This document shows, in pieces, positions 10,182 through 61,908 of a stretch of DNA of 64,000 nucleotides. Every line of letters begins with the position of its first letter. The first letter of the stretch is position 1. The DNA lies in NCBI GenBank assembly GCA_004764695.1, contig SMSO01000031.1:4750436-4814435 (forward strand), in the 5' to 3' direction. Position numbers and translations under genes: made by a program. This DNA is from Schizochytrium sp. TIO01 (lineage: Eukaryota; Protista; Bigyra: Labyrinthulomycetes). The notes below the pieces were generated by a model. It worked only from the letters and a program-made list of their open reading frames with translations. It did no database searches and had not been told where the DNA came from.

Positions 10182-13100
10182 GACCTACATGCGTACCATC
10201 ATCTCCAGTCAAATCGAATAGTCCAAGTTTTTCTTGCCAGAAACCCAAGGTGGCAACTAGCATTCGGTCGCGCTTCTTTGAAGTGCTAGCAGGTGCTCAC
10301 TTATCCTGCTACGCCTTTCCGCTGTGCTTTCCAGCATTACAAAAGTGGAAACGTCTTTCGACCAATTGGCGAGGCCTTGATGCGGAAAATGTCGCGCTCT
10401 CGTTACAAAAAACAAAAGACATCGGTCAACGTCGTCGTCGTCGTCGAAACCAACCTGCGGATGTGACAAACCCTCGCAAACTCTCTGTCCTCGGCCTCGC
10501 TAGTGAGCGAGCGAGCGTGCGTGCGTGCTTGACATTCAGGCCAGAGCAGAGGCCAGGAAGCCGCGGCACTCTTCGCGATCGAATAGAGGGCTTCCTGTGC
10601 CATATAGTTGACACTTCTTTGCAGGGAGTGAGTCGAACTAAGTCTCCGCTACTCTGCTTTAGCGCTTTGGTCGCCGTAGTGCATTTCTCTCCGTCTTGGG
10701 GCTTCTACGCTCTGCTAGGAGAACCCCTAGGGTCTCCTAGCAGACGGCAGTAATCTCATCGCCCCTCACAAAGCATTTGGCAAGTGTGAAAGTTATCGCA
10801 GCAGAGTTGGAGGGAAGAAGAAAGAGAGGGTCTTCTTAGAGGGAGGTAAGATAAGAAAGCGTGGCATTTGGCAATCGATGGGTCAGCGAATCAATCTACT
10901 CGCCGCGCCCCACCGGCACCCCTCCCTTCTTCCGCCTTGCGCAATGAATCTGAGGCGGAGGCGACCGACGTGGGTGGATCTTCCGAGCCTCCGCTGCGAT
11001 GCGACTCGTCGCTGGGTAAACAAATTTATTTATTTATTTATTTATTTGGACACGTGACTATAATTTCAATCTCTTTGTTTGGGAGGCTACGTTATAGCGT
11101 TTTGGCGCCATAGCTGCTTGTATACTCTTAATATTCATTAAAGAGAGGTACACGAATACAACCACGTTGCAAAGTCAGTTTATTAGTCTTCACTTGAAAT
11201 TAAGACTCCATATTTTAAAAGTTATTTTGGCAGATTAAAAACAAATATTATATATATTTCTTTCGACATTATGATCGAGGAGAATTGGGGTAAACATGTA
11301 CTACACGAGGGTGATAGAGTAGTAATAATAGTAATGAATAGACAGAGAGAAAACAGAGTAAGGATATTGTGACAACGAGCTTTGCGTAGGCTTAGTTTTT
11401 GTTTTGATTGTATTTACTTAGGAGTTCTGCATTTTTTATTTAAGGCAAAAGATGAAATGATAGTGGTGGAGACTTTTTTATTTTTATTTTTTTTTTAATA
11501 TGTGTGAATATCCCCCCCCCCCCCCCCCCCTTGCTACTACTATTCTTTTATAATGAAAATTAGCTTGTAAAATTTTGATCTCTTTCAATATTTCACACTA
11601 TACAAGCACCAGCTATGTAGTACGTATTAGCGTCTTTTTATTTTCTGATATTTTATATTATATATATTTTTATTTTAAAAAATTAAAGGTGCAGGTTACA
11701 TGGGAAGGACATTATCATGAGTAGACGTCCCAAACAGCGAACAATATAGAAGTGTTTCATATATCTACACTTCAAAAAAAGAAATGAAACTAAAAACCGT
11801 ATAGTATAATATATTTGACTGTCACTTTCAATGTTTCCTCTACGATTTAGCATATGAAGAAACTCTGGAATATGCTAAGACATTCTGCAATATAAGTTAC
11901 GCTTCTCCCCAGGTACAGATAGTAACTCCTACCTGATATCTCAATACTAAGCTTATCATTAAAATTTCTTGCGCGATTGCGTAGTAGTAGTAGGAACTTC
12001 AGGACCCAATCTTTGCTTTCTCTCTTAAAGGTCGCAGATCACTTCTGTCCGTAGCAGTTTAAATATTCTTTCTATATATTAAAACTTTTAGGTATATAAT
12101 TGAGTGGCCACTGGATGCTTAACCGTCTAAAGTAGGTCCTTCATGTAACACAATCGCATAAACATCTCATATATATATAATATAATATATAAGTAAATGC
12201 GTCACTTCGCCGGATCATTAATATGGCGGGTTTATCTTTCACATTTTGACCCATTATATATAAAATGCTTTCCTCAGATTAATGCAACGTTTTTAGGCTT
12301 CGCCTAGTCAGTTTGGCAGTTTTAAATGTTTTAAATTCAAAAAGCCGTAGGTAGTCTTTCTAGAATTACTTTTAATTTGAATTTCCCCTATCGCGAAAGC
12401 TCGAGAATGGACCTTGTGCCACACTTAATCTGGGAAACTCGAAGAAATTATTTTTAAAACGAGAGAGAAACGGTCAGTGCAAGCCGAGTAACTACAAAGT
12501 GATAAAGTTTCTTTTTATTCTTTTGATCATTCACTCCAAAAGTTGTCAAGGAAATTTAATTAAGCCAGAGACGCAATGTCTTATTCGAAAGTAGCATCGT
12601 AAGTTCAACTCGATAGCAGCCTGATGCGGCATTCAAAAATTGCAGTTTCCTTCCTGCTTTTGAAGCGTATGACTATGAATGAAAATTGATGTTGTCAACT
12701 GAATACTCATTCTTATTTGTTATAAGCACCATGTTTGATACATTAACCCTTTAAAACTTATACAGAGAGATCAAAAGTACAACTCTCAGTAAAGGGGGAA
12801 ATTGTATATACTGTTTAAGGGTGTGAATAACAGAAGAGCCTCATTCTTCAAAGGGCATCTATACGAATGTTAGATTTAACAGAATTAAGATGGTGTCATA
12901 TCAAATTCCTTTTTGCAACGATAATAAGGGCTTCTAGTTTCCTGAGGCAAAATTTGCAAATTAACTAGACTAATCAACACTGTTTTACATTCAGCAGGAG
13001 CTCTGACTTAATATATTTCTGTTGCGCCTTAACCTAGAAGTAATACCTATACTGCTAGAAGTTCTTGCAAGTTTGTGATCCGATATGCGCAAGTTTTGTT

Positions 13101-15740
13101 TTTCTGATTATAAATAGATGTCCAGCCAACTAACGATTCCCATTAACTTGTTCTTTTGAAAATGATAAGCTGGGATTAGGTTCGTTGGATTCAGACTTTT
13201 TGAGGTGGCGTATAGTTTGTTATTCTTCTTCATCGTTATACCTTTTGCAACCTTGGAAAAGTGAAAGCACTTTAAACCCCCTTGGCTTACCTATCATAAC
13301 TCTAACCTAAGGATCTTTTTTGCTAGTTGTCAAACTTACACCTTTTCCTTCTTCTGATTCTTATTTTCATGGATCAATCCTATCGTACCTACGACTGCTA
13401 TACTTTAAAATTCTGACCCGGGAAGTTCGTAACGTCATAATAGAAGAAGATCATAATTGATCCTCCTAAAAGTTTTCTAAGTGTTTTTTGTTTTTGTTTT
13501 GTTTTGTTATTTTAATAAGAATTAAAAGTGCTCAATTTCAAAAGTAGGTAGGGACAGTTTTAAATTTTAAAATGTAATGAGTTCTCAATTAATTTAGATT
13601 AATTCAAAATAAAAGTATTATAATAAAGTAATAGATGGACATTTATTTCACCATAGGTACCTTCCATTTCCTTTTTTTTCTTCTCATTCCCTCCCCTTTA
13701 TAAACACTTTATTAAACAAATCGATTGATATGTGAAATAAATCGATCGAAGTCATAATAATGATAATATTTGTTTTCAACTCCCTTAAAATTTCCAAGCT
13801 AGGGGACGAAAAATGAATATGTGCTGTAAACTTTCATAGATAATTTTTTAATTTCAAAACCAAGAAATAATCGAAAATTGACGAACGACACTAATTGCTC
13901 TATCTTCTACTTTACTTCTTAGCGGTGGATTCTCCGTCATAGCACGTGTGCTTCGAGGCATTCTGCTGCTGCCTACGCTTGAACGCTTAGGCCTTTGCTG
14001 CTAATTATGTTCCAAGATGCTAGGACGGACGCTCGTGTTATGCCAAAGTAGGGCGGATCAGAGTTCACATGCACCGCCATCATCATGTTCCTTTACCAAC
14101 CAATTGATTACCGCGTCTTTTTCAATTGCGATGTTTCTTCCTTCTCCTATGAGGCGAAGAGAAAGTCTTTGATTTATCTACAATGCATTCCCTCACTCAC
14201 ACTCAATCACTCTCTCACTCACTCACCCACCCACCCACTACGCTGTCTGTCCATTTCCGTACAATAAAGCTCACTCTTTAAACTATCAAATCAGAAGAGT
14301 TTTGACGTCGAACTCGAAGAGCGCTCGATTCCTTTTCCACCGCTCCTGTAGAGTTAGTTGTATAATGACCAACCTACCTTGTAGTAGCGAAGCTGAGAGG
14401 AGTTCGCAGCAGATATATGTTTTGTATTCTTGGGTACTACAAGCTGTGCGCCTGTGACGGAATCGGCCCCGGAGAGTCACAGAGTACCACTGTGAAAGCT
14501 TGTATAGCTTTCAATTCGCAACAGTCATCACAGTCCTAGTTGGCAACGAATCAAGCACGGTGTCCCCTGGTTGGAAAATATGACGACTTGCAACAAGCGC
14601 CGGGCTCTACTCCAGCACGAAGTCCGTGCCTTCGCTAGTTTCCTAATTTCTCACTGTCCGCTGAGCTCCCAAAGCCCTCTCTCTGGAAACTAAAGAAGGT
14701 TTTACTTTAACATTTGTTTTGCTTTGCTTTGCTTGCTTGCTTGCTTTACATCAAAGTCGAAGAAACTATGAAAGATGAAGTGAGTGATTAATTATCTTCA
14801 AGCTCTTTGCGGAGAATTGCAAATTCACTTACTTTATCTAAACAGATAAACAGTAAATATTTTTAATGGAGGAAAAAGTAGATGAATAAAGAGACCAAGG
14901 GACCCTTCCCTTCTTCTTTTTGTTTTCAACAGTGACAGCAGCCCGCCCAATTTTTATTTTTTACTCTCTCTTTTAAAATAAAAATAGTATTTTAAAATAT
15001 TACTAATAGAAAATGAGAGAGAAAGATTAACATTTTCCTCAACAACAACATGTAAAGTCTGGCATGGCGGCCTGCCCCGTGCAGGCTTCCTGAGCGATAT
15101 GCGGGGTGGTGACGAGGCAGACACTGACCCTGGGTTCGAAGAAGTAGGCAGCATGCGTCCTTCAGAGTGGGTGCAGAACTGTCGCTGTTGAAAAAACAAA
15201 GTTAGCGCGTTCCCTCGTAGATCCATCCTGCGTTGCTTTCTTTCTTTCTTTCTTTCTTTTTTCAATTAGTTATTATTTTGAACGTATGTTTGGCAATTCG
15301 GGCACCCGCTTAGACTACCGGAAAATAAGAGCAGAAACTTATTTAATATCGCGAGAAGAATCTTTATAAAACTTCGTCTATTTTCTTTCTTTTCCGACTG
15401 AATAGCCTGAGCGCCGGTGTTTTAGATTACAGAGTTTGCGCGATAAAAGAGGCGAACTCAGTCCTTGCGTACCGTGAATGCTCAATCCTCGCGGGACCAT
15501 GAGAGAAACCTCCCGGAGCTTATATTTTCTCGAACAGCTGCTCCTCACGGCCTGTGTCCTCATTCCGTGGCTGCACCAGAAATTGGTTGGTACATTCACA
15601 TTCATTCATTGATCATTCATTTTGATTAATTGATTGAATTATTGATTGAATGGTCACTTGAAGCGTGTGTGAACGAAGAAATAACTTTCGATAAAAATGA
15701 ATCAATCACTCAGAACAATTACTAGAACTATTCCGATGCG

Positions 15741-25400: not shown

Positions 25401-26326
25401 TATAATATATATTATATATATTATATATATATTCGTGTAGAGCGGCCCTTGTTTTTAGTATTTCTTTGTGGAGCGATTGATTGAGCAGACTTAAATTGGT
25501 TGCGTTGGGTTGGCGCAAGAGAAGTGGAGAGGCGGAGGAGGCGGAGACACAGCTGAGCTGGAAGGACCTTGGCCTGGTGGCTTGGGCTGATTCCGTTTCG
25601 TTTCCTAGGGTCGCTTCCTTTGGTGCAGCGTTTTGATTGTTCATACCCTTTCAGTCAAAACCACTCACTCACTCACAGCTTTGGCTTTTGCTTTGGCTTT
25701 TGCTTTGGCTTTTGCTTTCGTTCATTTGTTTGTCTGTATTGCGTTCTCTTCTTTCGTTCTCCTTTTGTTTGCCCTCTCTTCTTTTTTAATTTGAAAGAAA
25801 ACAAAAATTAAAAAAGTTGTTTGTTTCCAAGGCGCCCTGCGCGTGTAGTAGAACAGCAATCAATAAACTTTGAAGGCGGAGGTCAGGAAGCAGCAGTAGA
25901 AGTCGAAGACGCTCGCAGCTGAGATCGACCGAGGAAGCTGACAGCTGCTGCTAGGGGAAGAGGCCACAAGCGAGGCATCGATAAACCAGCAGGAAGCAAA
26001 AAAGGCGCAGGTTATTTGCACGAAAAGTGGTTTCTTCGTTTAGGGCCGCTGTAGACTCCCAAAGCCCCAGGACTGTCAAAGAAGCAAAATACAGACATTT
26101 GCAGAGATTTAGCACCTGCACATCGTGTGGAAATTGTCAAAAGAGGATAGATACATCGAAACGCTCGCACGAAACGCCTCCGACGCATTGGCGCTCGCGC
26201 GGCATCTCGTGATTTCATCTAGGAAAACTGTATAATTTGCAGACTGACAAGACGCATCCATATTACCCCACCGCACCATACCTCGTCACATCAGAAGACC
26301 TCGAAGGTACAGCCTTCGTCGAGCTC

Positions 26327-28726
26327 ATGCCCAAAAGGCGACGACAACCTGGGCGACCTCTGCAGCAGGATGGCAAGAATAGTTCGCTCCCTGTCCCTTC
26401 ACATCAGCAGTCACACCTCCCCACTGAACCTGGGCAGGTTAACCTTCATGAAAGAATTGTTAATCAACACCGTCAACACCAAACGCCACCAAGACCTTCA
26501 AATACGGCTACTGCAATAGGAGTGTCATCATTACACCAAAACAACAACATGCCTTCTTCACCACGCGGCCGTTCACCTTCCGGAAATACAAAGTGGTTAC
26601 ATGAGTTTAACATTGATTCACTCCTCGATGTTTACGACGACTCTGCTAATGGGCCCTCGACACATACCCAGGATGAAAACGGGACCCCATCAACTAACCC
26701 CATGATGATGGATTCAGTTGCTCTATCAGGCCATGCGCAGCAAGTTAGGCAAATTTTTCCTTCACAGCAAGCAATACCTCCCCCAACTGGACTTCACGCC
26801 CATAGCAGCAACAACAATGCTCACGAGAGGAATAGGAATAACAGCAACAACATCAGTAGCAATAGTAACAACAATAGCGGCAGCAGTAACAACAACAACA
26901 ACAATAATAAAAGCGGCCTTTTGCGTGTGCCAGCTGTAGCGCCCTCAGGCATATCATCTTCGTCCTCATCCTCCTCACTATCCTCGTCATCACTCAATGC
27001 ACCAAACACTAGCGGTGCTAGCAGCAGCAGTAATACAAATAGCACTAGTGACACTGAGGGAAACCGAATACAGCAACAACAACAAGCACAGGTTCAAGAT
27101 TCAGGCCCAAAATATCATCAGGTTAATCAAGTTGTTCGCAGCCACAGCGATGTTTCACAATCGCACATACAACAATCAAGAGGAAACGCTCAGCTAGAAC
27201 ATCGCGAACGCACTTCCTCTACATCCTCATCCACATCAGCCAGTGTACATGGAAACAAATCATCAACGTCACCCGCCCCTGACGCTTTTCAAACATCATT
27301 AGAAGTATTTCTTCGATTCGTCAAGGAGCGAGAAGATAACTCTATTGACGCGAGTGGAGTTCTCAGCCCAGGGTGCTTTGATGAATGGGTACGTACACGA
27401 AAAAGTATGCTCAAGGCTCCACAGGAATCTTTCCGACGCACGTTGACAGCTCACGTCACAGGTCTTGATGGTCGTAAACCATTTCCTCCCAAAGTTGAGC
27501 AGGCTTTACTTATTGAGCTTAGGCAGCAGCGAATCTGGCCTTGCTTTAAAGGAGTCATTGTCAAGGGCCGGAGAAGCAACATTGGCATGCAAGGCTTCCG
27601 CACACTTGGATGGCACGAGCGTCATGAACAAGGCTTCGAGTCCAAGTCCCGTAAAAAGAAATCTAAGAAAAACTCTCGTCGGAGAAACACGGCATCAAGC
27701 AGCAGCGTGAGTAGCAGTAGCAGCAATAGTAGTAGTGATACCTCTAGCAGTAGCGATGAGAGCGACGCCGGGCCAAACTCAAAGCGTCAGCGTAAAGGAC
27801 GTCGTAAGAAGAAGAGGAAGCGCCCCAAACAACCTACAGATATCCTGCAGCAAGTCCGGGCGGCAGCTGCAACATCGATGGGGCCTTTTGATGCTTTCTG
27901 GCGTAATTCAATAGCTAACGCAACAACTTCTTCTAGCGTAGGGGCTTTAAGCGCTCACCAATCAGCATCAGGTTCACAAGGCGCCACTACAAATACAACA
28001 GGTGGAAATTCATCTTCTTCTGGAACCAACCCCAATGACGCTGTTGTCCCCGAGTTTCAACGCCAAGTTAACACAGTACGCTGGATGGAAAATCGTTCCG
28101 TGCTTGAGCTTTTGCTCCGAATTTTTAACATCCACACGTATGAGTACTCCTCCCATGCAAGGTATCAAGATCCAATGAATCAGTCACTCTCATTGCTTGA
28201 TAGCAGTGCTATACCAACAACTTTACGTAGTCAGCTTGTCTACAACATTGTACGCTGTATGGCCCCTCACGTTTTCTGTGGTTGTTATGGAGCTATTGTT
28301 GGCCTTAACCCAATGGCATTACAGCCACCCGTTATTGCAGCTCTGGCTCAATCAAATGATCCTATGACCATTCAGCAAACGAGTTGGTTTGTGGATCCTT
28401 CACTTCAACAATTTTCCAATGTGCTTCCCATTGGTCATCTAAACATCTGCGGTTTAACGATGGTAATTACAAGTGCTGATACTCAGACTATGCAGCTACT
28501 TGGAAACAGTCTAGTAGGCGTTCATCTTTCACAGCTGATGGACCCTGTAGCCTTTTGGGCAGGTCTCACAAGCTTCACCCTTGTTTTATTCTCCTCTGCG
28601 AGTACGGCTTGGGCTAGACTACCTCTACGTATGAATAGCATGGACATGTATGGAAGATACTACCTTACGAAATGGACATGGAATGAGCACAACATTTCTT
28701 TGCTAATTCAACCATTTTCCTCCTAA
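26327..28726 (+). CDS. Uncharacterised ~800-aa nuclear protein, putative transcription factor or sensor (low-complexity Q/N/S tracts, central globular domain, basic NLS clusters, C-terminal PAS-like domain)
   Basis: The frame is open from 26237 to 28726 and the first ATG is at 26327. A TTTGCAG acceptor ending at 26242 could allow an upstream exon. The ordered domain FDEWVRTRK...ESFRRTLTAHVTGLDGRKPFP...WPCF...GWHE lies at ~27287-27619, followed by basic clusters KSRKKKSKKNSRRR and KRQRKGRRKKKRKRPK. Coding status is well supported; function is inferred. Confidence 0.85.
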   Translation: MPKRRRQPGRPLQQDGKNSSLPVPSHQQSHLPTEPGQVNLHERIVNQHRQHQTPPRPSNTATAIGVSSLHQNNNMPSSPRGRSPSGNTKWLHEFNIDSLLDVYDDSANGPSTHTQDENGTPSTNPMMMDSVALSGHAQQVRQIFPSQQAIPPPTGLHAHSSNNNAHERNRNNSNNISSNSNNNSGSSNNNNNNNKSGLLRVPAVAPSGISSSSSSSSLSSSSLNAPNTSGASSSSNTNSTSDTEGNRIQQQQQAQVQDSGPKYHQVNQVVRSHSDVSQSHIQQSRGNAQLEHRERTSSTSSSTSASVHGNKSSTSPAPDAFQTSLEVFLRFVKEREDNSIDASGVLSPGCFDEWVRTRKSMLKAPQESFRRTLTAHVTGLDGRKPFPPKVEQALLIELRQQRIWPCFKGVIVKGRRSNIGMQGFRTLGWHERHEQGFESKSRKKKSKKNSRRRNTASSSSVSSSSSNSSSDTSSSSDESDAGPNSKRQRKGRRKKKRKRPKQPTDILQQVRAAAATSMGPFDAFWRNSIANATTSSSVGALSAHQSASGSQGATTNTTGGNSSSSGTNPNDAVVPEFQRQVNTVRWMENRSVLELLLRIFNIHTYEYSSHARYQDPMNQSLSLLDSSAIPTTLRSQLVYNIVRCMAPHVFCGCYGAIVGLNPMALQPPVIAALAQSNDPMTIQQTSWFVDPSLQQFSNVLPIGHLNICGLTMVITSADTQTMQLLGNSLVGVHLSQLMDPVAFWAGLTSFTLVLFSSASTAWARLPLRMNSMDMYGRYYLTKWTWNEHNISLLIQPFSS

Positions 28727-31420
28727 TCCCAAGGCTTATGTCGCTCGCCTGAGTTTGAATATTGTCTCGTCATAGCTTATTTACGAAAGTTAGCCAACCT
28801 GCCCTGCATTTCCAACGAGTGAGGGGCTGCCATTCTGATCGGAGAACCATTTTAGGCCAAGCTTGCTTTGTTCCCCGATAGTTTGCATGACCCTTTGCCG
28901 CGAAGCAATCCTTAACTACCTTATACACGATCACAAGTGACCATACCTTTTTCTCCTGCTGATCTGCGTCATCCCAGGCATGTTCGGATAATTAAACGCA
29001 GCAAAAAGGTATTTTAATTCACACAAGCATAGAGCTTCATTGCAAAATGTTGCAAACTGCTCAGTGATACAAACCCCCGACTTTCCACAAAGCAAAGAGC
29101 GTACAGCTAGTTCGCTATAATTCTGATGAAAGCAAGAATCAAAACTAAGCGTGAGCATCAATCTGGTGGATGGGACGTGGTTCACATTACTTACGTTTGC
29201 CAACCCCTTCACTGATTATGAACGATAATATTTGACCCGCATGATTCTCTAAGTGGACTTGTAATGTAGAACTCATCTCCCGCATACACAATGCATAATC
29301 CGAAGAAAATATCGCTATACAACGGAACACAACACAGATGTACGAATTGCTGTCAGACTGTGTGGACGCAAGCCTGACTTTTAGAGCTTTCCTACCTTTG
29401 CTGCTTCCTTCTCACGCTCCCGGCATGCCTTTTTGGGCCTTTTTTTATAGAACCAAAACGAGAGCATACGTGTGGTGAATACACACACTCATTCACACAA
29501 AAGCGAGATAGAATCTCACTATTCAAAACATGTGATACAATACTAAAAGGACATGTGATGCAATCATAGAAAAGTATAGGGCTTAGCTTAGTTCTGCTAA
29601 GTCCTTTGTATAACAGATGGTTTGCATACAAATGAAAATTGGAGGTGCAGCAAAACGTTCCCCTTCAGCAATAGCTTAATAGCTTACATTCAACGAGGTT
29701 GGCGTGCAATATACATTTTTCTGTTTTGATTATGAAAGCCCCGTTAGCTTTAAAACTCCCATTTAGCCCAACTACTATTATATCTTTTCTCTCTATACAT
29801 CATATATTCTGTTGCATTGTTATCTGAACAGTATTTTGCTTGAAGCCCCGGAAGAAGGCAAGCAACGTACAACCTGGTGTGCTTGGCATCGTGTTGTCCT
29901 GCAAAAGTACAGTAACTATTTTTTATAGTTCCCTCCCACAATACCATTGCAAGTAAAAAATAAATAAAGCATCTCTCCAATGAACACAAAAAATACGCTT
30001 CAGGAAGGCCTTTACACGAAAGCTATAAGCTTGTATTGGTACCTAGTAAAATATATTCATCAAAATTAGATCACTCTAGCCTTGGTTTTACTACCATCCC
30101 TTCAATTTGAGGAATCTTGATCCTTCAATCAAGCTATCCGGGAAAATAGTTTTATCTAGCTAGAGGTTGCGCAAGGACGCCTTTTAGTAGCAACTGCATA
30201 CTAGGTCATGTGGTGTGCTTTATTTTAGTATCATGTCAAACGAATGGAACGAGGTGTCTACCTGCCTCAGAAAATATCGTAGGGACATGAAGAGAAGGTA
30301 GCAATTACTGTAAGGATGCAAGTACGCTTTAACAAAATGCTGATTTGAGCAAATTGTAAACATTGAAGAGTTTGTTGACTTCGCTAGATTGATAATTCAT
30401 TGGGCTGTACATGAAAAAAACATAAGGCACTATAATAGTAATAAGGTGTTCAAACAAGTTTACTCACTCCATCTTAATCTAACATAATTTCTGCAAGGTT
30501 TTGCAATTATTACTTAAGCATAGGCTTGATGAGAGTCTTCCATTCATAGTTGGGGCATGATAAATTGGAGATTTGGTTTTACCAGAGCGCTGTACTCCAA
30601 CCAGCACCCCTTTTTTCTAATGCTGCTCAAGTCAATTCCTGTAAAAGACTTTGTTTATGTCATCTGTTTTCTATTTAATGCTAGTGTAATGTATACTTAC
30701 TCGATGTGAGATAACAATGACGCAAATCTGGTTTCACGTAACAATTGGGTGACAACAAAGATCAAGTAACTCACCTCATGAAATTCGCAGAAGATTAACG
30801 ACTCATGTATTTGGCAAGCAAGAGCACATCGACTAACTATTAGAAGCTAGTTCTACTTTCATTGTGCTTTTCTCTTACTTATTAACTATGAATAGAATTA
30901 TGATGTTTAAAAGCTCAAGTGTTTCTCTTGCATGCAGAAGCAAGCTTACTTTGCGGCAGACCGGACTCCATCATACTTTTAAAATAACATATATGGCTAT
31001 ATGATAATATTTTTCTTTAAACGGAGATCACTTTCATAGGGAGCTTAAGATGCGAAAATCGTTAGCCTAGATATTATCACCATGGGGCGCGAAGCTATTC
31101 AAGAAAGGAGTGCAAGAATAAACACAAGTAGACGAAGTTTCAAACAAAATTTTGATGTCATAGATGGTAGGTTTTATATTTCTTTATATTTTTTTTAACT
31201 CAAAGGTTTCCAAAGAAAGTCACAGGGAAGCAATCATCGGTTGCAAACTTTGCTGCTCATAGGTATTCACCTGCTCTGCCTCATCATTTATACGAAAAAC
31301 CTTATCCTGCACAAGCCGGCCTTGACACTAATTACACGGTTCATGCCAGATCGAAGTGGAGTGGAGTAGAGAAACTAAGCGAGAGAGCGAGTGTTAAAAA
31401 AAGAGTCCACTTTATTTTAC

Positions 31421-32311
31421 TTACTTAGCCACAGGGGTGACAGTGTTGTAAATATCAGTGCGCTTCTGCTTGCTGATAGGAATGTTCGTACGGATCTCAT
31501 CAGGGCGGTCAAGGTCAATCTCAGCATAGACAATCGCAGCATCATGTTCAGTGGTGGCAAGAACCTCTCCCCAGGGGGAAACCACAGAAGAGTGGCCCCA
31601 GGCCTGGTACTTGGAGTCCGGGTTGCGAGCAGGCGAAGCAGTAGCAACGTAGAGCTGGTTATCAACAGCACGACCGCGCTGAAGGAGTTCCCAATGAGCA
31701 GGTCCAGTAGTAGTGTTAAAGGCACCAGGGTACACGAGAAGCTTGCAGCCCTGCTCGCGAAGAAGCATGGCATACTCAGGGAAGCGGATGTCGTAGCAGA
31801 TACCAACACCAACCTTGCAGTACGGGGTGTCGAAGACGGTGACAGAGTTACCGGCGCTCAGAGTATCGGACTCCTTGAAAGTGATGCCGCCAGGAACATC
31901 GATGTCGAAGAGGTGGACCTTGCGGTGCTTGGCAAGGAGCTCACCCTCAGGGCTGACAACGAGGCAGGTGTTGTATACCTTGCCTTCAGAGTCCTTCTCG
32001 GGGAAGGATCCGCCCACAAGGTAGACACCGGACTCCTTAGCCACCTCGATCAGCATCGCGGTGGAGGGGTGAATCTCGGCATCAAGATCCTTGGCAGAAG
32101 AAGGGATTTCCTCGGCGTATTTGGGGAACATATCGGTGGCATAGGGGCTGTTGAAGCACTCCGGGAGGGACACAAGCTTGGCGCCGTTGCTGGCAGCCTC
32201 TTGGACGGCCTTGCGAGCGGACGCGAGGTTGGCGGCCTTGTCAGTGCCCACGAGCACTTGGCACATGGCAAGCTTGAGCATCTTCTTGCCGGTCTCAGCA
32301 GCCACAGACAT
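31421..32311 (-). CDS. NIT2: Omega-amidase NIT2 (carbon-nitrogen hydrolase / nitrilase superfamily)
   Basis: 296 aa, intronless. Glu-Lys-Cys triad motifs [22 protein letters not shown] and [10 protein letters not shown], plus the NIT2-typical [25 protein letters not shown] and YQAWGHS. Strong codon bias. Confidence 0.95.
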
Positions 32312-34007
32312 GTTGAATGTAAGAAAAGCGAAACGCTAACAAAGGACGAAGAGCGAAGTCAGTGGAGCAGCTCGGTGAGCTATTGCAATTCCGATTTGCT
32401 ACTTGCTTCCGACGGATTGATCAAGAATAGACGGGCATATATATATATATTGCCAACCAGTCTATTCCCTAAGAAAATGCAATAGCAGATATCGATCAAT
32501 CAATACATGGATAGATACACTCCTACCTAGTTAGGATCTATGTAGCAGTAGAGTAGATTGCTTAGAAGTAGGTACCTACCTAATGCATTAATTTAATGAA
32601 TCAGCAGTGGCAATTCAGATCCCAAGCATCGCGGACTTGCTGAGGAAGTAGAAACCAGCGAGCAGCCTTGAGAGGAGGAACTCTTGAAAAACGGTCTTGG
32701 AATGCCATAAACTCCTTGCAAGATGACAACCTGATGAAGCGGTGCAGAAAAGCTGCTCCTTTGGACGAGTACCCGAGAGGATACCTTCAAAGCTACGCTG
32801 AAGCAGAGCAGGTGGCTCTCTAAGTTGCTCAGATCAAGACATGGAATTAATTGCTCAAGAAGGCTTACCTAGAGATCAACGAAAGGTTGGAGATAAGTTT
32901 TGTAGAAGCGACTGCCCAATTGGTGAAGGCTAGGACTGGCCTCAGGGAAAGAATAACTGCGTAGACCTGCGGTGTTGTTGTTCTTTTTTATTAATTTATA
33001 AAGAGGAATATGGTGGGTCACAAGAGCGGCTTCGGGAAACGCTGCCTTTGGGTTGTGCTGTCGGAGCGCGAACAACTCATAACGCACACATGGCATATAC
33101 TAGTAGATAGATGATACCCTGAGCATCGACTATTCCATTGCAATGATTCTAAGGTGAAGATGGGAGTAAAGCGGGCTGGTAGGAGTTCTTAACACAACGA
33201 ATAAGCAGCTTGTATTGCCCTTGTCATTCATTGACATTAATTTTGGTGGGCAATGATTAGCGAGCAAGATTCCAGCGAGCGACGCATTCTTTAAATTCAA
33301 AAGAGCTAAACAGTGTGCAACATAACAGGTTAGTTTGGATGATGTGAGCTAGATTGGAAACATGCAAGAAGTTCGTTAATCGAAGTCATGGCTACTTCTT
33401 TGGCGATTTCTGAAAATACAGATGTCCGATACACGTTATTTTGCATGTTTTTGCTGCAAGGGAAGTTCTCTAACATGTGTCGAATTTTTCTTGGAAAAAC
33501 GATGTGATCCTGGTGGTTATGCAGATGAAACTGTTCTCGCCAACTCTAATCGAGGATGTTTTTGCAATTTATAGAAACTAACCCAAATTATCGACCAGTA
33601 ATATAAACAACGATAGAGAGATTTCTTTGAAGTGATTTTAGCTGCATCAAAGCAAACCCAATGATATGTCATACTGTTGTTGCAACAAATGTAGCATACA
33701 GCAACAATCGGTTTTTACATGGTGATTAAATCTCCTTGTCACTTTTGCTCTTCACTAATTTTACTTGAGGACTAGTAGTTAGGTCTACTAGCTAGAACCA
33801 TCTAAATAAAGACCAAGTTGGGCGGCGCAGAGATAAAACAACTTAGTGGTAAAGCCTGGTTGTGCCACTTGAGCACGCCCATCCATTCGCATTATCAACC
33901 CCCAAGCCTCCCTAGCTTGCCCCAAAGCCACTGAATAGCTGCCGTTTGCTTCGCGCAGTATCAGATTCAAACTTAAGTGATTCTGTGAAGAGAATCAGTG
34001 GTGGCCA

Positions 34008-49401: not shown

Positions 49402-52400
49402 ATAAACACTTACGAGCTTATATTCGAAAATGCGTTTGTTATTTGACCCTTCTCACTGCACTCTCCCAGGTGGTCGCTAGTCCGCACATGCGTCAACGTC
49501 AAGCCTCCGAGGAGGGATTGGTGAATAGGGACACCTTGATACTGAATTTTTCATCACCCCACCATTATCACCATACCTTGGATGAGTTGTAGTGAGCTTG
49601 TGTTTTGTGCTCTCATCTCTTTCTAGATTCAGCCATGAACCAAGTTTTGCTCATCCCACTCAACCTTGCTCCTTATAACTTGCTCCTTTTCTATGCGTCA
49701 CTCTTTCAGTACATACATCGAAATTTACTTGTGATCTCTGTCTTATCTTGCTTGTTTGCTTTTGTTTCGTTCCAGTTGAATTCTATCTATATTCTTCATA
49801 CAATGATGATGTAGTGGTTCATTAAGTGATGTGGATTATTAGTACTAAGTGCTTCAATCCAAACTTTGTTATCTAAGGTACATGTGTGCCACGTTTAATT
49901 TGAAGACAATAAAACCCACACATTACTTTGAGACGTACTTTGTACTACCTTATTCACCGCGGGAGCAACAGACGAGCGAGTGTTTTGGGTTACATTGCTT
50001 AAATGATTAACTAGAAACCATATGAGAGTGGAAGAAGAGTATTAAGAGCAAACTATTCGGTGATCAAATACACAAGTGTTAAACGTTAGCTTATAGAAAA
50101 TGATAAGTATAAGTACCAAAGTTGCACGGTTGGCTACACGATGAATAACTTGTCAATAATATCTACACATTCGTAGAGAAGGTACTCCAAAATCTACACC
50201 TACTAATGTTTGGGTCTACTTTAACCTCAAGTTTTTATTCTCGAGATGGCTGCACCCAAAAATCTTCGAATTGCAAACTGATATGAAAAACTCTAATGAG
50301 AAGTAAGCGAGGTGACGTGTGGCAGTCGGCATACGTAGAGCTAGGTCACTCATGAGGGTTCATTGGGATTGGTACACGAAGTAAATGCTTGAAGAACATC
50401 TTGTGAATAAACAAAGTTTGTTTGCATTACTGTTTAGTACACTCTCCTTTACTTGTCCCCTGCCTTTATTTAAAAAACAAATAGTAGCAATACCTTATAC
50501 TTGCACGGTTCTGAGTCAAGGCCTCTAATTTATTAAACAATTATGTATAGCTTTGCAGAATAAGTATTAAGTACTATCACTACTTTATTTTGACAATCAA
50601 GTGGGCAGTTTCAGAGCACCAATGTTTTGATTTGCTAACTCTTTTCCAACTTGTTCGTCCGGCTTAGCGTTAATTTTGCAGTCTCTCGGTTCCACCTGCA
50701 GCTTGAAATTGCTCTTGCTCTGGGGGTATCTAACCCTAATACAACAAATTTGGTTCTAATTCTCAGAAGTATTAGATCATAAGGCAGTTACTATAATCAA
50801 AGCGGAGCAGACAGCACCTATAGGCTGTTGCTAGACTTACAGTTTACAATATAATTAATTCTACTTTCAATTAATGGTATACTTGTGCGCTCTGAAGCTC
50901 TTTGCTTCGAGTAGGAGATCCCTAAATGCGACGAAACATGTACAGCAGTGAGTTAGAATACGTAGAAAGTTTAGTGTACTTCATGTGCAGGCTCTTATTG
51001 AGCAGATAAACGGATGCATCATTAGGTCGTACGTCGAAAGGCCAAGAGGAATGGCCTTTAAAATATTTAATTTCGTGGAAATACAATCTACAGGAGTATG
51101 TATATGTGGAAAGAAAACACAAAAGCAGAAGAGGATTTATGTGAAATAAATATTGCTGAAGGTAGGAGCTTTCGCATACAAGTCTTAATATAAACGGTGA
51201 GATAAAGCGTCGGAAATGTTACATAAGCCCTTTAAGAGAAGGCTATATATTGAAAGACATGAGACATAGATATTCTCATCACAGAAAACTTCAAGAATGC
51301 GAGTGATACCGACGAATGGATTCCAAAGCCATGTTAAGCTTGTTTTCTAAATCAAGTTTAGGGGAGATTTCTTGACCTCTGGTCATTATCCCAACAGTTT
51401 AGCATTTCGTCCAGTTCTTCAATCATCAGTAGGGGTTTCATTTACCTGTAACCTGCTAAGAGGAAATGATTTGGTGTCAGCCACACCCATCTAATCTTGA
51501 TTGTTACCTAGCAGAAAGTGTACGTACTATATTTCATACTTCATGACACCTCAGGATTTGCGAAGATAGCGAGGAGCTCTTGCTGAATATATATATATTC
51601 CTTTGATTGAAGATCTTAGTTGAAGTCTAACTTTGAAGACAACTTTAATGTTTTTCAAATTTCTTTTAAAAAAACATAGACTTGGACGCTTACTTATATA
51701 CATAATCTACAGAACTTTTGCATGAGAAAAGGAGATGAACAAAATTCCCTTCATCCTTTTGTTCTTGTTCCCTCGACATCTCTCTTCCAACTCACTCGGT
51801 ATTTTGAGACGATGGCTATGCTTTAGCCGACTTTCTGTACTATGAGCCTTTGATATTCTACCATGAACAGCCTTTGCGAGCAAGGTATGTTGTATTTGAT
51901 AATATGGACTTGTATAAAATCAGAGGCGATTAATCTAGCAAGTATTTAGCTTATTATGTTGTCTGGATTTTGGTATTCAGAACAAAGGATGTACGCACGT
52001 TACTGGGAGTAGTTCTTTCGGACTGATGTTGATTTACTTCAGTGAGACTGTTAGATACTTTGCACGTGAGCTACATACCAACCCTCTCTGGAATATTTAA
52101 GGTAAAGGCATTCTAAGGGTAATTCAAGTGTTGTTTTTAATCGGGTTCAACTTGTAAATAAAATAGAAGAACTTAAGGCACGGACATTCCTATATCCAAG
52201 ATGTAATTCAAATGGAAATACTACACGAATGCTAAACGTTGACAAAATGATGTAATTTATTGCATTGAATCATTCAATATTTAAATCTCCACAGCATGCA
52301 GGATAGGGCATAGAGTTGGAAAGACTTGCTTCTACATGCAGTCAATCTCACCGTTGTATGCCACAAAATATGCTCTTTTTCCCACTTCCCAGAGTGGACA

Positions 52401-58254: not shown

Positions 58255-59217
58255 TTAAAGGAGTCCTCGGTATACAGCAACAAAGACTCCGATTACAAAA
58301 AATATGACTCCAATGAGAAGGTTCAGCTTATACTCTTCGAAGTGGTATGCAAAGTGAGATGCGATGATGATAGCCACAAAGTTGCACGGCAAGGAAATCT
58401 CTAGAGGAAGAATGATATCGTCCCATACAACGACGTCGCGATAGATATACAAAGCAATTACGCCCAGCAAAGAAACTGACATCATGGGGCCACTCACTGC
58501 TGTGCTTGATAGAATATTCATCTGTTGGGTATTAAACAGAATCACGGCCATGCCATTACCACCACCAAACCCGACTGATCCCATTCCCACACCAATAAGA
58601 GCGAAAAAGATATAGCTACCATATTTAAAGCAAAAGCTTCGTTTGGGAGTGTCTGACTGTTCAGATTGCGCAACTTCAAGATCCTTCGTCGAGCTCGTTT
58701 TCGCTTCTGTCATGTCTCGTGAGATGTCAGATGTTCGGGACTCACCAGGTCCGATGACCACACTTGCACTGACAACCTGCTCTTCTTCTGAATCTTCATC
58801 ATCACGAGTCTTATTCTTACGGTTACGGTACCCTCTGATGATGAAAAAAAGTCCTAAGACAATGATAGCGGCACTGGCAGCTACACCAATATTTGGGCCA
58901 GATCTGGCCAAAAATTCGATACCATACGTTGCTGCACAGGATACTGAGATAATAATACATTCAATGACAAGTATAACAGGGCGTTGCCAACTTCCGATAT
59001 GATGAAGAAGCTTGCGGTACCTGAAGCCAATGATCAACCCATTCATGACGTCAACGACGAAGCAAACGAATATTGCGCTGATAGGATCAATGTCAAAGGT
59101 AAACATAAGGACAGGAAACATGGTTAAAAATGCAGTAATTGCCAGAGCTGCGCCGCCGCATCCATTGAGGACGGCGATAATGGCTAGCAGTGCCACCTTC
59201 CAAGCTACAATAGCCAT
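58255..59217 (-). CDS. TauE/SafE (TSUP) family sulfite/anion exporter-like membrane protein, copy 1
   Basis: 320 aa, about 8-9 hydrophobic segments in two halves separated by a charged loop; GSVGFGGGNG glycine motif typical of TSUP. Confidence 0.75.
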   Translation of the reverse strand: MAIVAWKVALLAIIAVLNGCGGAALAITAFLTMFPVLMFTFDIDPISAIFVCFVVDVMNGLIIGFRYRKLLHHIGSWQRPVILVIECIIISVSCAATYGIEFLARSGPNIGVAASAAIIVLGLFFIIRGYRNRKNKTRDDEDSEEEQVVSASVVIGPGESRTSDISRDMTEAKTSSTKDLEVAQSEQSDTPKRSFCFKYGSYIFFALIGVGMGSVGFGGGNGMAVILFNTQQMNILSSTAVSGPMMSVSLLGVIALYIYRDVVVWDDIILPLEISLPCNFVAIIIASHFAYHFEEYKLNLLIGVIFFVIGVFVAVYRGLL

Positions 59218-60948: not shown

Positions 60949-61908
60949 TCATCCTATAATAAGTCCATATGCTACCGCAAAGGAGCCCAAAATGACGAGT
61001 AGGACACCAACAAGCATGGTGATTTTATGCTCTGCAAGATGATACGCGTATCGAGCTGTAATGACCACAGCAACAAAATCAACGGGTACTGCAACCATTG
61101 TTGCTAATTTTATATTTTCCCAAGCAATATCTCCTCGGTAGAGTAGGAGAATGATTAACCCGGTTATAACCACGGCAGAGATAAGGCCACTCGCAGCTGT
61201 ACTAGGAAGTACTCTCCAGCGTTGCAAAATTAGCAACATAATTGCCATTCCATTTCCACCTCCAAATCCAAAAGAGCCTACTAAGACACCCATTAATGCA
61301 AAACCAAACACAGTTAAGATGTCTCGAATGAACATCGTTCGCTTTGGATGAGTAATTTCTTCCTCCAATTCTCCTTGCATGGCTGACTCTACATCTGGTT
61401 CCTTACCCTCCATTGTGTAGTCTCTGGTCTCTACTCCGCTAGAGACATGGCCAAAGCCTGCTGCGTGGACTACGCGCATCTCATCAGTTTGCGACTTTAC
61501 AAAAGCTCGACGAGCTCGAACTGCACGAATGATGAAGCCAATGCCCATAGCAATGACCACCGCACTCACACCAACACCAAGCGAGCCTCCATTGTTCTGT
61601 ATAAATTGGACACCGTACATCACAGCACATACTATAGCTGCAGCAAGGCAAGCAATTGACGCAACGATAATGATGCTGGGGTGCTTTATGTCTTTGAGAC
61701 AAGCACGATATCTAATACATATGGCCAGTCCATTGAGCACATCTACGATGAAGCACAGGAAGATAGCATCTAAAGCTGGTGTGCCGAATGTCGTAACCAA
61801 AACAGGAAAAATAATTAGGTATGCTGAGACTGCCAGCGCTGCAGAGGCCACGCCAGTGAGTGCTGCTACACCTGCTAGCAAGACGATCTGCCATATGACC
61901 ACCGCCAT
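60949..61908 (-). CDS. TauE/SafE (TSUP) family sulfite/anion exporter-like membrane protein, copy 2 (tandem paralog)
   Basis: 319 aa, colinear with copy 1. Shared motifs (copy 2 / copy 1): MAVVIW / MAIVAW, FPVL..TF, AIF.CF.VDV.NGL, GS.GFGGGNGMA, STA.SG, YHL.EHK / YHF.EYK. Confidence 0.75.
   Translation of the reverse strand: MAVVIWQIVLLAGVAALTGVASAALAVSAYLIIFPVLVTTFGTPALDAIFLCFIVDVLNGLAICIRYRACLKDIKHPSIIIVASIACLAAAIVCAVMYGVQFIQNNGGSLGVGVSAVVIAMGIGFIIRAVRARRAFVKSQTDEMRVVHAAGFGHVSSGVETRDYTMEGKEPDVESAMQGELEEEITHPKRTMFIRDILTVFGFALMGVLVGSFGFGGGNGMAIMLLILQRWRVLPSTAASGLISAVVITGLIILLLYRGDIAWENIKLATMVAVPVDFVAVVITARYAYHLAEHKITMLVGVLLVILGSFAVAYGLIIG

Follow-up and report, generated by a model that had tools for sequence, protein, structure and literature searches.

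A sequence-cryptic PAS domain predicted at the C-terminus of a putative nuclear regulator in a lineage-restricted labyrinthulomycete family

We analyzed a 64,000-nucleotide stretch of DNA from the labyrinthulomycete Schizochytrium sp. TIO01 (GenBank assembly GCA_004764695.1, contig SMSO01000031.1, positions 4,750,436 to 4,814,435 of the forward strand), hereafter the window, whose own numbering is used below. At 26237–28726 on the plus strand it carries a gene whose last ~100 residues had been proposed, in a sequence-only reading of the same DNA, to form a cryptic PAS-like sensor domain in an undescribed regulatory protein. The open reading frame (ORF) runs uninterrupted for 829 codons plus stop from the listed TTG, with no need for an intron, and its first ATG, at 26327 (MPKRRRQ...), gives a protein of 799 amino acids (aa). 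The Logan-assembled protein P0001 is 99.5% identical to the window protein, the sole differences lying within an Asn/Ser-rich tract. As judged from its predicted structure, the C-terminus of this protein very probably adopts a PAS fold, and it is joined in a single chain to a conserved basic domain that recurs in at least nine genes of the genome.

From its N-terminus the protein consists of a presumably disordered low-complexity region rich in Ser, Asn, Gln and Thr (26327..27277, +; computed composition 48% S+N+T+Q, isoelectric point [pI] 10.2), followed by the conserved basic domain of ~115 aa (27278..27628, +; ORF residues 348–464, from a hidden Markov model [HMM] match). Two tracts that resemble nuclear localization signals (NLS) by sequence come next: basic tract 1, KSRKKKSKKNSRRR (K470–R483; 27644..27685, +), and basic tract 2, KRQRKGRRKKKRKRPK (K516–K531; 27782..27829, +). 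A conserved, mostly helical region (28076..28420, +; residues 614–728) with the motifs WMENRxVL... and P.T.R...V+..VR..P..F leads into the sequence-cryptic PAS domain (28421..28723, +; residues 729–829), in which we assign A-beta, B-beta, C/D/E-alpha, F-alpha, G-beta, H-beta and I-beta, and which ends in ...LIQPFSS directly before the stop codon at 28724–28726. The codon for V729 starts at 28421; the domain start of 28420 given previously is thus one base too early, and the end given, 28726, coincides with the final base of the stop codon. Scanned in full against Pfam at E ≤ 10, the protein showed no real domain; its sole match, to SR-25, has E 5e-4, does not reach the family cut-off and is compositional, falling on the Ser/Arg/Lys-rich linker at basic tract 2.

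We modelled ORF residues 600–829 with AlphaFold2 together with four homologues (construct residue i corresponds to ORF residue 599+i). The model has a mean predicted local distance difference test score (pLDDT) of 63.8 and a predicted template modelling score (pTM) of 0.64, with successive 10-residue pLDDT blocks of 80, 86, 79, 80, 66, 61, 71, 63, 80 and 77 across the PAS part; the region at 614–728 is predicted as helices at moderate to low confidence (blocks of 42–76). Two strands, 733–738 (GHLNIC) and 743–747 (VITSA), are followed by a helix at 749–755 (TQTMQLL), a short helix at 764–767 (LSQL) and a long helix at 770–786 (PVAFWAGLTSFTLVLFS), after which come three further strands at 790–797 (TAWARLPL), 807–815 (RYYLTKWTW) and 819–826 (NISLLIQP). 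The resulting order across ORF 733–826, beta-beta-alpha-alpha-alpha-beta-beta-beta, is canonical for PAS domains and agrees element by element with the secondary structure that had been read from the letters alone; every peptide string quoted in that reading is present in the plus-strand frame of the ORF.

Comparison of the model with known structures points clearly to PAS domains. In a VIA-align search of ~48,000 PDB representative chains, 92 chains scored Z ≥ 8 and the best 50 were all PAS domains, the top match being 3olo_B (Z 12.2, root-mean-square deviation [rmsd] 1.6 Å over 88 residues); NPAS4-ARNT2, RpfR, BMAL1, ARNT, CLOCK, FixL, LOV domains and photoactive yellow protein were also among the matches. 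A second look, in which Foldseek's top chains were re-aligned, placed the PAS-B domains of PERIOD, BMAL1, ARNT and HIF-2a at Z 11.4–12.5 and rmsd ~2 Å, so that the best scores overall are Z 12.2–12.5, with rmsd of 1.6–2.0 Å over 88–96 residues; matches at Z ~12 span the whole domain with rmsd of 1.6–2.6 Å. Because the tool's stated best Z for models without a true match is typically 7–8, a Z of ~12 stands clearly above background. Foldseek itself returned PAS domains at probability 1.00 and E 2e-4 to 1e-2 (bacteriophytochrome, HIF-2a/ARNT, CLOCK/BMAL1, FixL and DOS), and an ESM Atlas protein-language-model search, taken as a lead only, gave photoactive yellow protein and PAS clusters at 0.90 and 0.89.

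AlphaFold2, Foldseek and VIA-align therefore agree on the five-stranded PAS alpha/beta fold proposed for the C-terminal ~100 aa, and the predicted structure has the five-stranded antiparallel sheet and C/D/E/F helices that characterize the PAS superfamily (Pfam clan CL0183). We consider it highly likely, on these models, that residues 729–829 are a PAS domain. A secondary-structure reading of raw sequence had here rightly forecast a fold that profile methods miss.

Sequence hallmarks appear once relatives are aligned. Across nine sequences, near-invariance is confined to three positions: the Asp at the B-beta/C-alpha junction and the Gly of a Gly-Asp/Asn segment, for both of which P0012 is the one exception, and the Gln of a QDVT motif. 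The aligned C-termini further display an amphipathic F-alpha helix, the glycines of ILG and VG and the Gly-Asp/Asn turn. Most relatives carry a strongly conserved tail, FQD(V/I)T-x-L-Y/F-P, where the canonical PAS domains of this genome have TDVT or TNVT; FQD(V/I)T is found in the paralogues L004b, L006, L014 and L015 and in the orthologues P0006, P0011 and P0012. A D-I/V-T motif at the C-terminal end of I-beta is the PAS 'DIT' position, which couples the sheet to downstream signalling elements.

The family is small and was reached through several searches, with residues 600–829 as the query for the first two. A word-indexed search of 5.8 billion proteins found only P0001, and when 1.84 billion representatives were searched exhaustively with HMMER, P0003 and P0004 emerged as the two true relatives. 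Two other matches were rejected as spurious: the bacterial repeat protein P0002, in which only a short 'VG.N.A...P.IAALA..DP.T' stretch matched, seven times, and P0005 (6637 aa). A profile search added P0006 to P0010, and a cluster look-up supplied the longer P0011, P0012 and P0013, of which P0013 has P0003 as a shorter form. In the exhaustive HMMER and profile searches, both domains occur only in P0003/P0013, P0006, P0011/P0004 and P0012/P0008, with the helical region 614–728 also conserved in P0003/P0013, P0006 and P0011. The basic domain stands alone in P0007, P0009, P0010 and P0018, and a metagenome scan yielded three near-identical loci with the basic domain only and no PAS. Co-occurrence of the basic domain with the PAS region, which had been suggested as a check on the proposal, was thus positive in P0013, P0006, P0011 and P0012, and the C-terminal region, whose absence from homologues had been named as grounds for refuting the proposal, proved to be kept both in paralogues and in homologues of other organisms.

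The source of both P0004 and P0011 is MMETSP0100, which is QPX (Mucochytrium quahogii), a thraustochytrid parasite of clams; the remaining sequences were likewise drawn from MMETSP and JGI transcripts, and relatives are recorded as complete MMETSP transcripts. Since these sources are transcripts, the family is expressed in the relatives. By the sequences recovered, it has so far been seen only in labyrinthulomycete-type stramenopiles. A literature search on PAS regulators in thraustochytrids found nothing.

Within the 64.07-Mb assembly (37 contigs), a profile search recovered nine loci with the basic domain (E 1e-67 to 5e-34), corresponding to at least nine genes. An HMM of the PAS segment, run on the fetched paralogue loci, matched the window copy (829 codons; E 1e-44), L004 (on C13; a gene split in two overlapping ORFs, with PAS in ORF L004b; E 3e-18), L006 (749 aa; E 3e-10) and L014 (1147 aa; E 7e-7). 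The match in L015 (869 aa) is weak (E 8e-3), but its QDVT tail is clear, and no PAS was found within the fetched loci of L003, L005, L007 and L010. By these matches, at least four of the at least nine basic-domain genes, and probably five, also carry a C-terminal PAS domain. The nine paralogue ORFs showed no Pfam domain. What had been put forward as a single undescribed system is instead one member of a multigene family; this expansion, like the conservation and the domain co-occurrence, is read directly from sequence comparison.

Two observations concern individual loci elsewhere in the genome. At L004:36-2757 (-), equivalent to C13 ~3519532-3522253, the basic domain and the PAS domain lie in different frames of 509 and 454 codons with a ~167-base overlap, pointing to an intron or a frameshift within the gene. 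At C13:2201475-2202503 (L017, L019 and L022), three canonical PAS_9 domains stand in tandem in one 1116-codon open frame; they served as a PAS reference.

The partner domain is well modelled and structurally isolated. It is basic (pI 10.3, computed on residues 352–462) and carries the motifs SLEVFL+FV, ESFRRxLTAHVTGxDGRxPFP, WPCF and NIGLQGFRTLG. An AlphaFold2 model of residues 346–465 with seven relatives reached pLDDT 91.2 and pTM 0.83 and shows a compact mixed alpha/beta fold. It has no significant structural match in the PDB (Foldseek best E 3.5; VIA best Z 3.4, with no chain at Z ≥ 5) and none in the viral structure library BFVD (best E 1.4), and searches of Pfam, PDB sequences and profiles and the ESM Atlas gave no usable match. 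CG-1 (PF03859) in particular was not matched by the whole protein or its orthologues at E ≤ 10, nor by the paralogue proteins at E ≤ 0.1. The weak structural rows for residues 348–464 are mostly winged-helix proteins (H1.8 at Z 3.2, H5 at Z 2.8, forkhead, E2F8, ETV1, ORC, MCM, cullin WHB and ESCRT-II), all at noise level (Z ≤ 3.4, Foldseek E > 3) and to be taken as a lead only. Given a confident model, no match and at least nine gene copies, we regard the basic domain as a candidate new fold or domain family.

The linker that holds basic tracts 1 and 2 has a pI of 11.6, and homologues likewise have K/R-rich tracts directly after the basic domain. The basic pI, the two K/R tracts and the tracts in relatives together make DNA binding and nuclear import plausible, the latter through the NLS-like sequences, which may act as import signals.

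The surroundings of the gene are eukaryotic in character, with a GC content of ~45% and typical eukaryotic neighbours (a NIPA Mg transporter, Methyltransf_16, CN_hydrolase and TauE). The nearest upstream ORF of at least 90 aa lies ~1.4 kb away and the nearest of at least 200 aa ~3.8 kb away; the 'very large' upstream control region suggested for the gene thus shrinks to a stretch of ~1.4–3.8 kb without recognizable genes or domains. Upstream of the gene, at ~25690–25790, lies a short low-complexity intergenic repeat of hexanucleotide type, whose plus-strand frames read (LAFA)n, (FCFG)n and (LWLL)n. Downstream, the CN_hydrolase (nitrilase-superfamily) ORF at 31421–32311 (-) encodes 296 aa (Pfam E 1.6e-65); opposite it, a longer antisense ORF of 364 codons at 31391–32485 (+), without a match in Pfam, is probably spurious. 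Two neighbouring genes of the TauE/SafE sulfite-exporter family, at 58255–59217 (-) and 60949–61908 (-) and of ~319 aa each, are likely a tandem duplication. GC content dips to 0.34 at 12001–14000 and to 0.37 at 50001–52000, against ~0.45 elsewhere.

Taken together, the explanation we favour, with some reserve, is a cryptic PAS domain in a nuclear regulatory protein that also carries a basic domain and belongs to a lineage-restricted family. The chain would run from a disordered Ser/Asn/Gln-rich N-terminus through the basic domain, the two K/R tracts and the helical region to the C-terminal PAS domain. In this scheme the basic domain would make the contact with nucleic acid or chromatin, and the PAS domain would be the regulatory module, forming homodimers or heterodimers with PAS-bearing paralogues as bHLH-PAS factors do, binding a small molecule, or both. 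Nuclear location, nucleic-acid binding, dimerization and ligand sensing are functions we infer, and the components of the proposal differ in strength: that the protein is a nuclear DNA- or chromatin-binding regulator is, to us, nearly an even call, whereas a regulator responsive to a small molecule, as the sequence-only reading had envisaged, seems unlikely. The most far-reaching version, in which an undescribed labyrinthulomycete class of PAS-coupled transcription factors would combine a DNA-binding domain of new fold with the PAS domains of ~5 paralogues in ligand-responsive homo- and heterodimer networks, convergent with animal bHLH-PAS proteins, is distinctly unlikely.

Several results weigh against the favoured explanation. 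No PAS family was detected in Pfam at E ≤ 10 in the window protein, four orthologues or four paralogue C-termini, so that no PAS model (PF00989, PF13426, PF08447, PF08448 and others) reaches its gathering score, and PDB profile searches with the C-terminal and family alignments returned nothing relevant. Aligned by hhalign with a reference built from the genome's own eight canonical PAS_9 (PF13426) domains, the family scored probabilities of 2.7% and 0.8%, which are not significant. With Pfam, PDB profile search and hhalign all failing to detect PAS, the label 'cryptic' is a fair one; as sequence methods give no significance, it is the predicted structure that places the domain in the PAS superfamily, and the best explanation is that the sequence has drifted past the reach of profile methods. 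That structure was itself predicted from a 5-sequence alignment, with PAS blocks at pLDDT 61–86 and the other four models lower in mean pLDDT. The nine-sequence alignment shows no conserved residue capable of holding a cofactor, and the His of a GxH motif is lost in paralogues. The window copy also lacks the D-V/I-T tail kept by most relatives: a 3' exon with such a tail is absent in any frame up to ~670 bases downstream, and in P0013, the closest relative of the window copy, the tail is degenerate (QRTT). With this tail lost, the window copy is atypical within the family. A predicted homodimer of two copies of residues 600–829 scored 0.00, a result that is neutral on dimerization, given that the partner fold was uncertain and the alignment unused. 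Finally, the basic domain resembles no DNA-binding fold significantly (best Z 3.4, the winged-helix rows being at noise level).

Some of these points also fit a somewhat unlikely alternative, in which the PAS domain is real but serves as a ligand-free interaction or scaffold module in a protein that is not a sequence-specific transcription factor, its basic domain binding RNA, chromatin proteins or something unrelated. The lack of a conserved cofactor-holding residue, the lost signalling tail of the window copy and a basic domain that matches no DNA-binding fold are all compatible with such a module, as is the identity of the closest structures by Z, the PAS-B domains of PERIOD, BMAL1 and ARNT, which are largely interaction surfaces, albeit in a statistical tie with ligand-binding bacterial PAS domains. 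Yet the basic pI and the NLS-like tracts beside a conserved domain suit a nuclear nucleic-acid-binding protein, and the weak structural rows of the basic domain are enriched in winged-helix DNA binders (H1/H5, forkhead, E2F8, ETV1, ORC and MCM). Many PAS-B domains once deemed ligand-free, moreover, have cavities, and ligand-bound HIF-2a and HIF-3a entries are among our structural matches.

Very improbable is a prediction artefact, in which the C-terminus would be a hydrophobic or membrane tail, with AFWAGLTSFTLVLF as a transmembrane helix, or some other non-PAS fold: the 19-residue segment of the window copy (mean Kyte-Doolittle hydropathy 1.46, zero charged residues), the shallow alignment and moderate pLDDT behind the model and the missing sequence-level signal speak for it, but the same helix in eight homologues and paralogues has a mean hydropathy of -0.27 to 1.44 with 1–6 charged residues, amphipathic strand and helix periodicity and PAS-typical D, G and QDVT positions are kept across the nine sequences, the structural Z lies well above background over the whole domain, and the language-model search independently points to PAS. 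A transmembrane helix at this place, named beforehand as an observation that would overturn the PAS proposal, was rejected on account of those charges; in the model, AFWAGLTSFTLVLF is the amphipathic PAS F-alpha helix and not a membrane span.

The favoured explanation, a PAS domain coupled to a basic domain in a putative nuclear regulator, would matter beyond this locus. No sensor and interaction module in biology is more widespread than the PAS domain, and to our knowledge only a few architectures fuse it to nucleic-acid-binding regions in eukaryotes (bHLH-PAS, bZIP-LOV and zinc finger-LOV/PAS). Here a multi-copy, lineage-restricted family appears to couple a PAS domain that Pfam does not see with a conserved basic domain that has a confident model and no structural relative, in thraustochytrid-type protists, which are of interest to both ecology and biotechnology. 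Should the basic domain bind DNA, PAS-regulated transcription factors would have been invented independently here, possibly together with a new DNA-binding fold; otherwise, at least five 'hypothetical' genes and their relatives still gain a C-terminal PAS annotation.

In function, the nearest analogues are PAS-coupled regulators of eukaryotes (bHLH-PAS proteins, aureochromes and White Collar) together with the one-component PAS regulators of bacteria. The PAS-B domains of animal bHLH-PAS proteins (ARNT, BMAL1, HIF-2a and PERIOD) share the predicted fold over 94–97 residues (Z 11.4–12.5, rmsd 1.9–2.2 Å), although identity is 3–13% and no profile-level relationship is detectable. As in bHLH-PAS proteins, the window PAS follows a basic region on its C-terminal side, within a putative nuclear protein, and the genome holds several PAS-bearing paralogues, which would permit heterodimer networks. 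The window protein is nonetheless not a bHLH-PAS protein: it has no HLH match in Pfam, and one predicted PAS domain in place of PAS-A and PAS-B, the region upstream being predicted as helical and not as PAS. Its partner domain, unlike bHLH, has no known fold, and its lineage is that of labyrinthulomycete-type stramenopiles.

Aureochromes (bZIP-LOV) and fungal White Collar-1 (LOV/PAS with a GATA zinc finger) are likewise single-chain eukaryotic fusions of a nucleic-acid-binding region with a PAS-superfamily domain; in aureochromes the PAS-type domain is also C-terminal, and they too occur in stramenopiles. LOV structures match the window PAS model at Z 9.5–10.7, slightly below the best PAS rows at ~12. 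The window protein, however, has neither bZIP nor GATA in Pfam, nor the flavin-binding LOV motif or adduct-forming Cys: GxNCRFLQ is absent from residues 729–829 and from the family alignment, and the sole Cys, C738, sits in the first strand. A LOV domain is thereby rejected, in keeping with the sequence-only reading, which had already concluded from the missing motif that the protein is not a flavin photoreceptor.

Bacterial PAS sensors, including 3olo, the fatty-acid-binding PAS of RpfR (6dgj), the heme PAS of FixL and a one-component transcription factor (10jx), have the same fold (Z 10.6–12.2) and, as in the window protein, carry PAS and an output or binding domain on a single chain. Neither the heme-ligating His of F-alpha nor the fatty-acid pocket residues can be identified in the window PAS, and a heme-PAS was rejected, with no motif or match found. 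Unlike the eight canonical PAS_9 domains of its own genome, which Pfam does recognize, the window PAS has no Pfam PAS match; the TMVITSADTQTMQLLG-NSLVG segment falls on PAS_9 B-beta to E-alpha (or G-beta) in the right register, with a 3-residue deletion after LLG at the hhalign probabilities given above, and the D-V-T after the last strand is common to the paralogues and the canonical domains, not to the window copy. Because agreement is limited to the fold, while the bHLH-PAS, LOV and Pfam PAS comparisons came out negative, we class the C-terminus as a sequence-cryptic PAS domain in what appears to be a new, lineage-restricted architecture.

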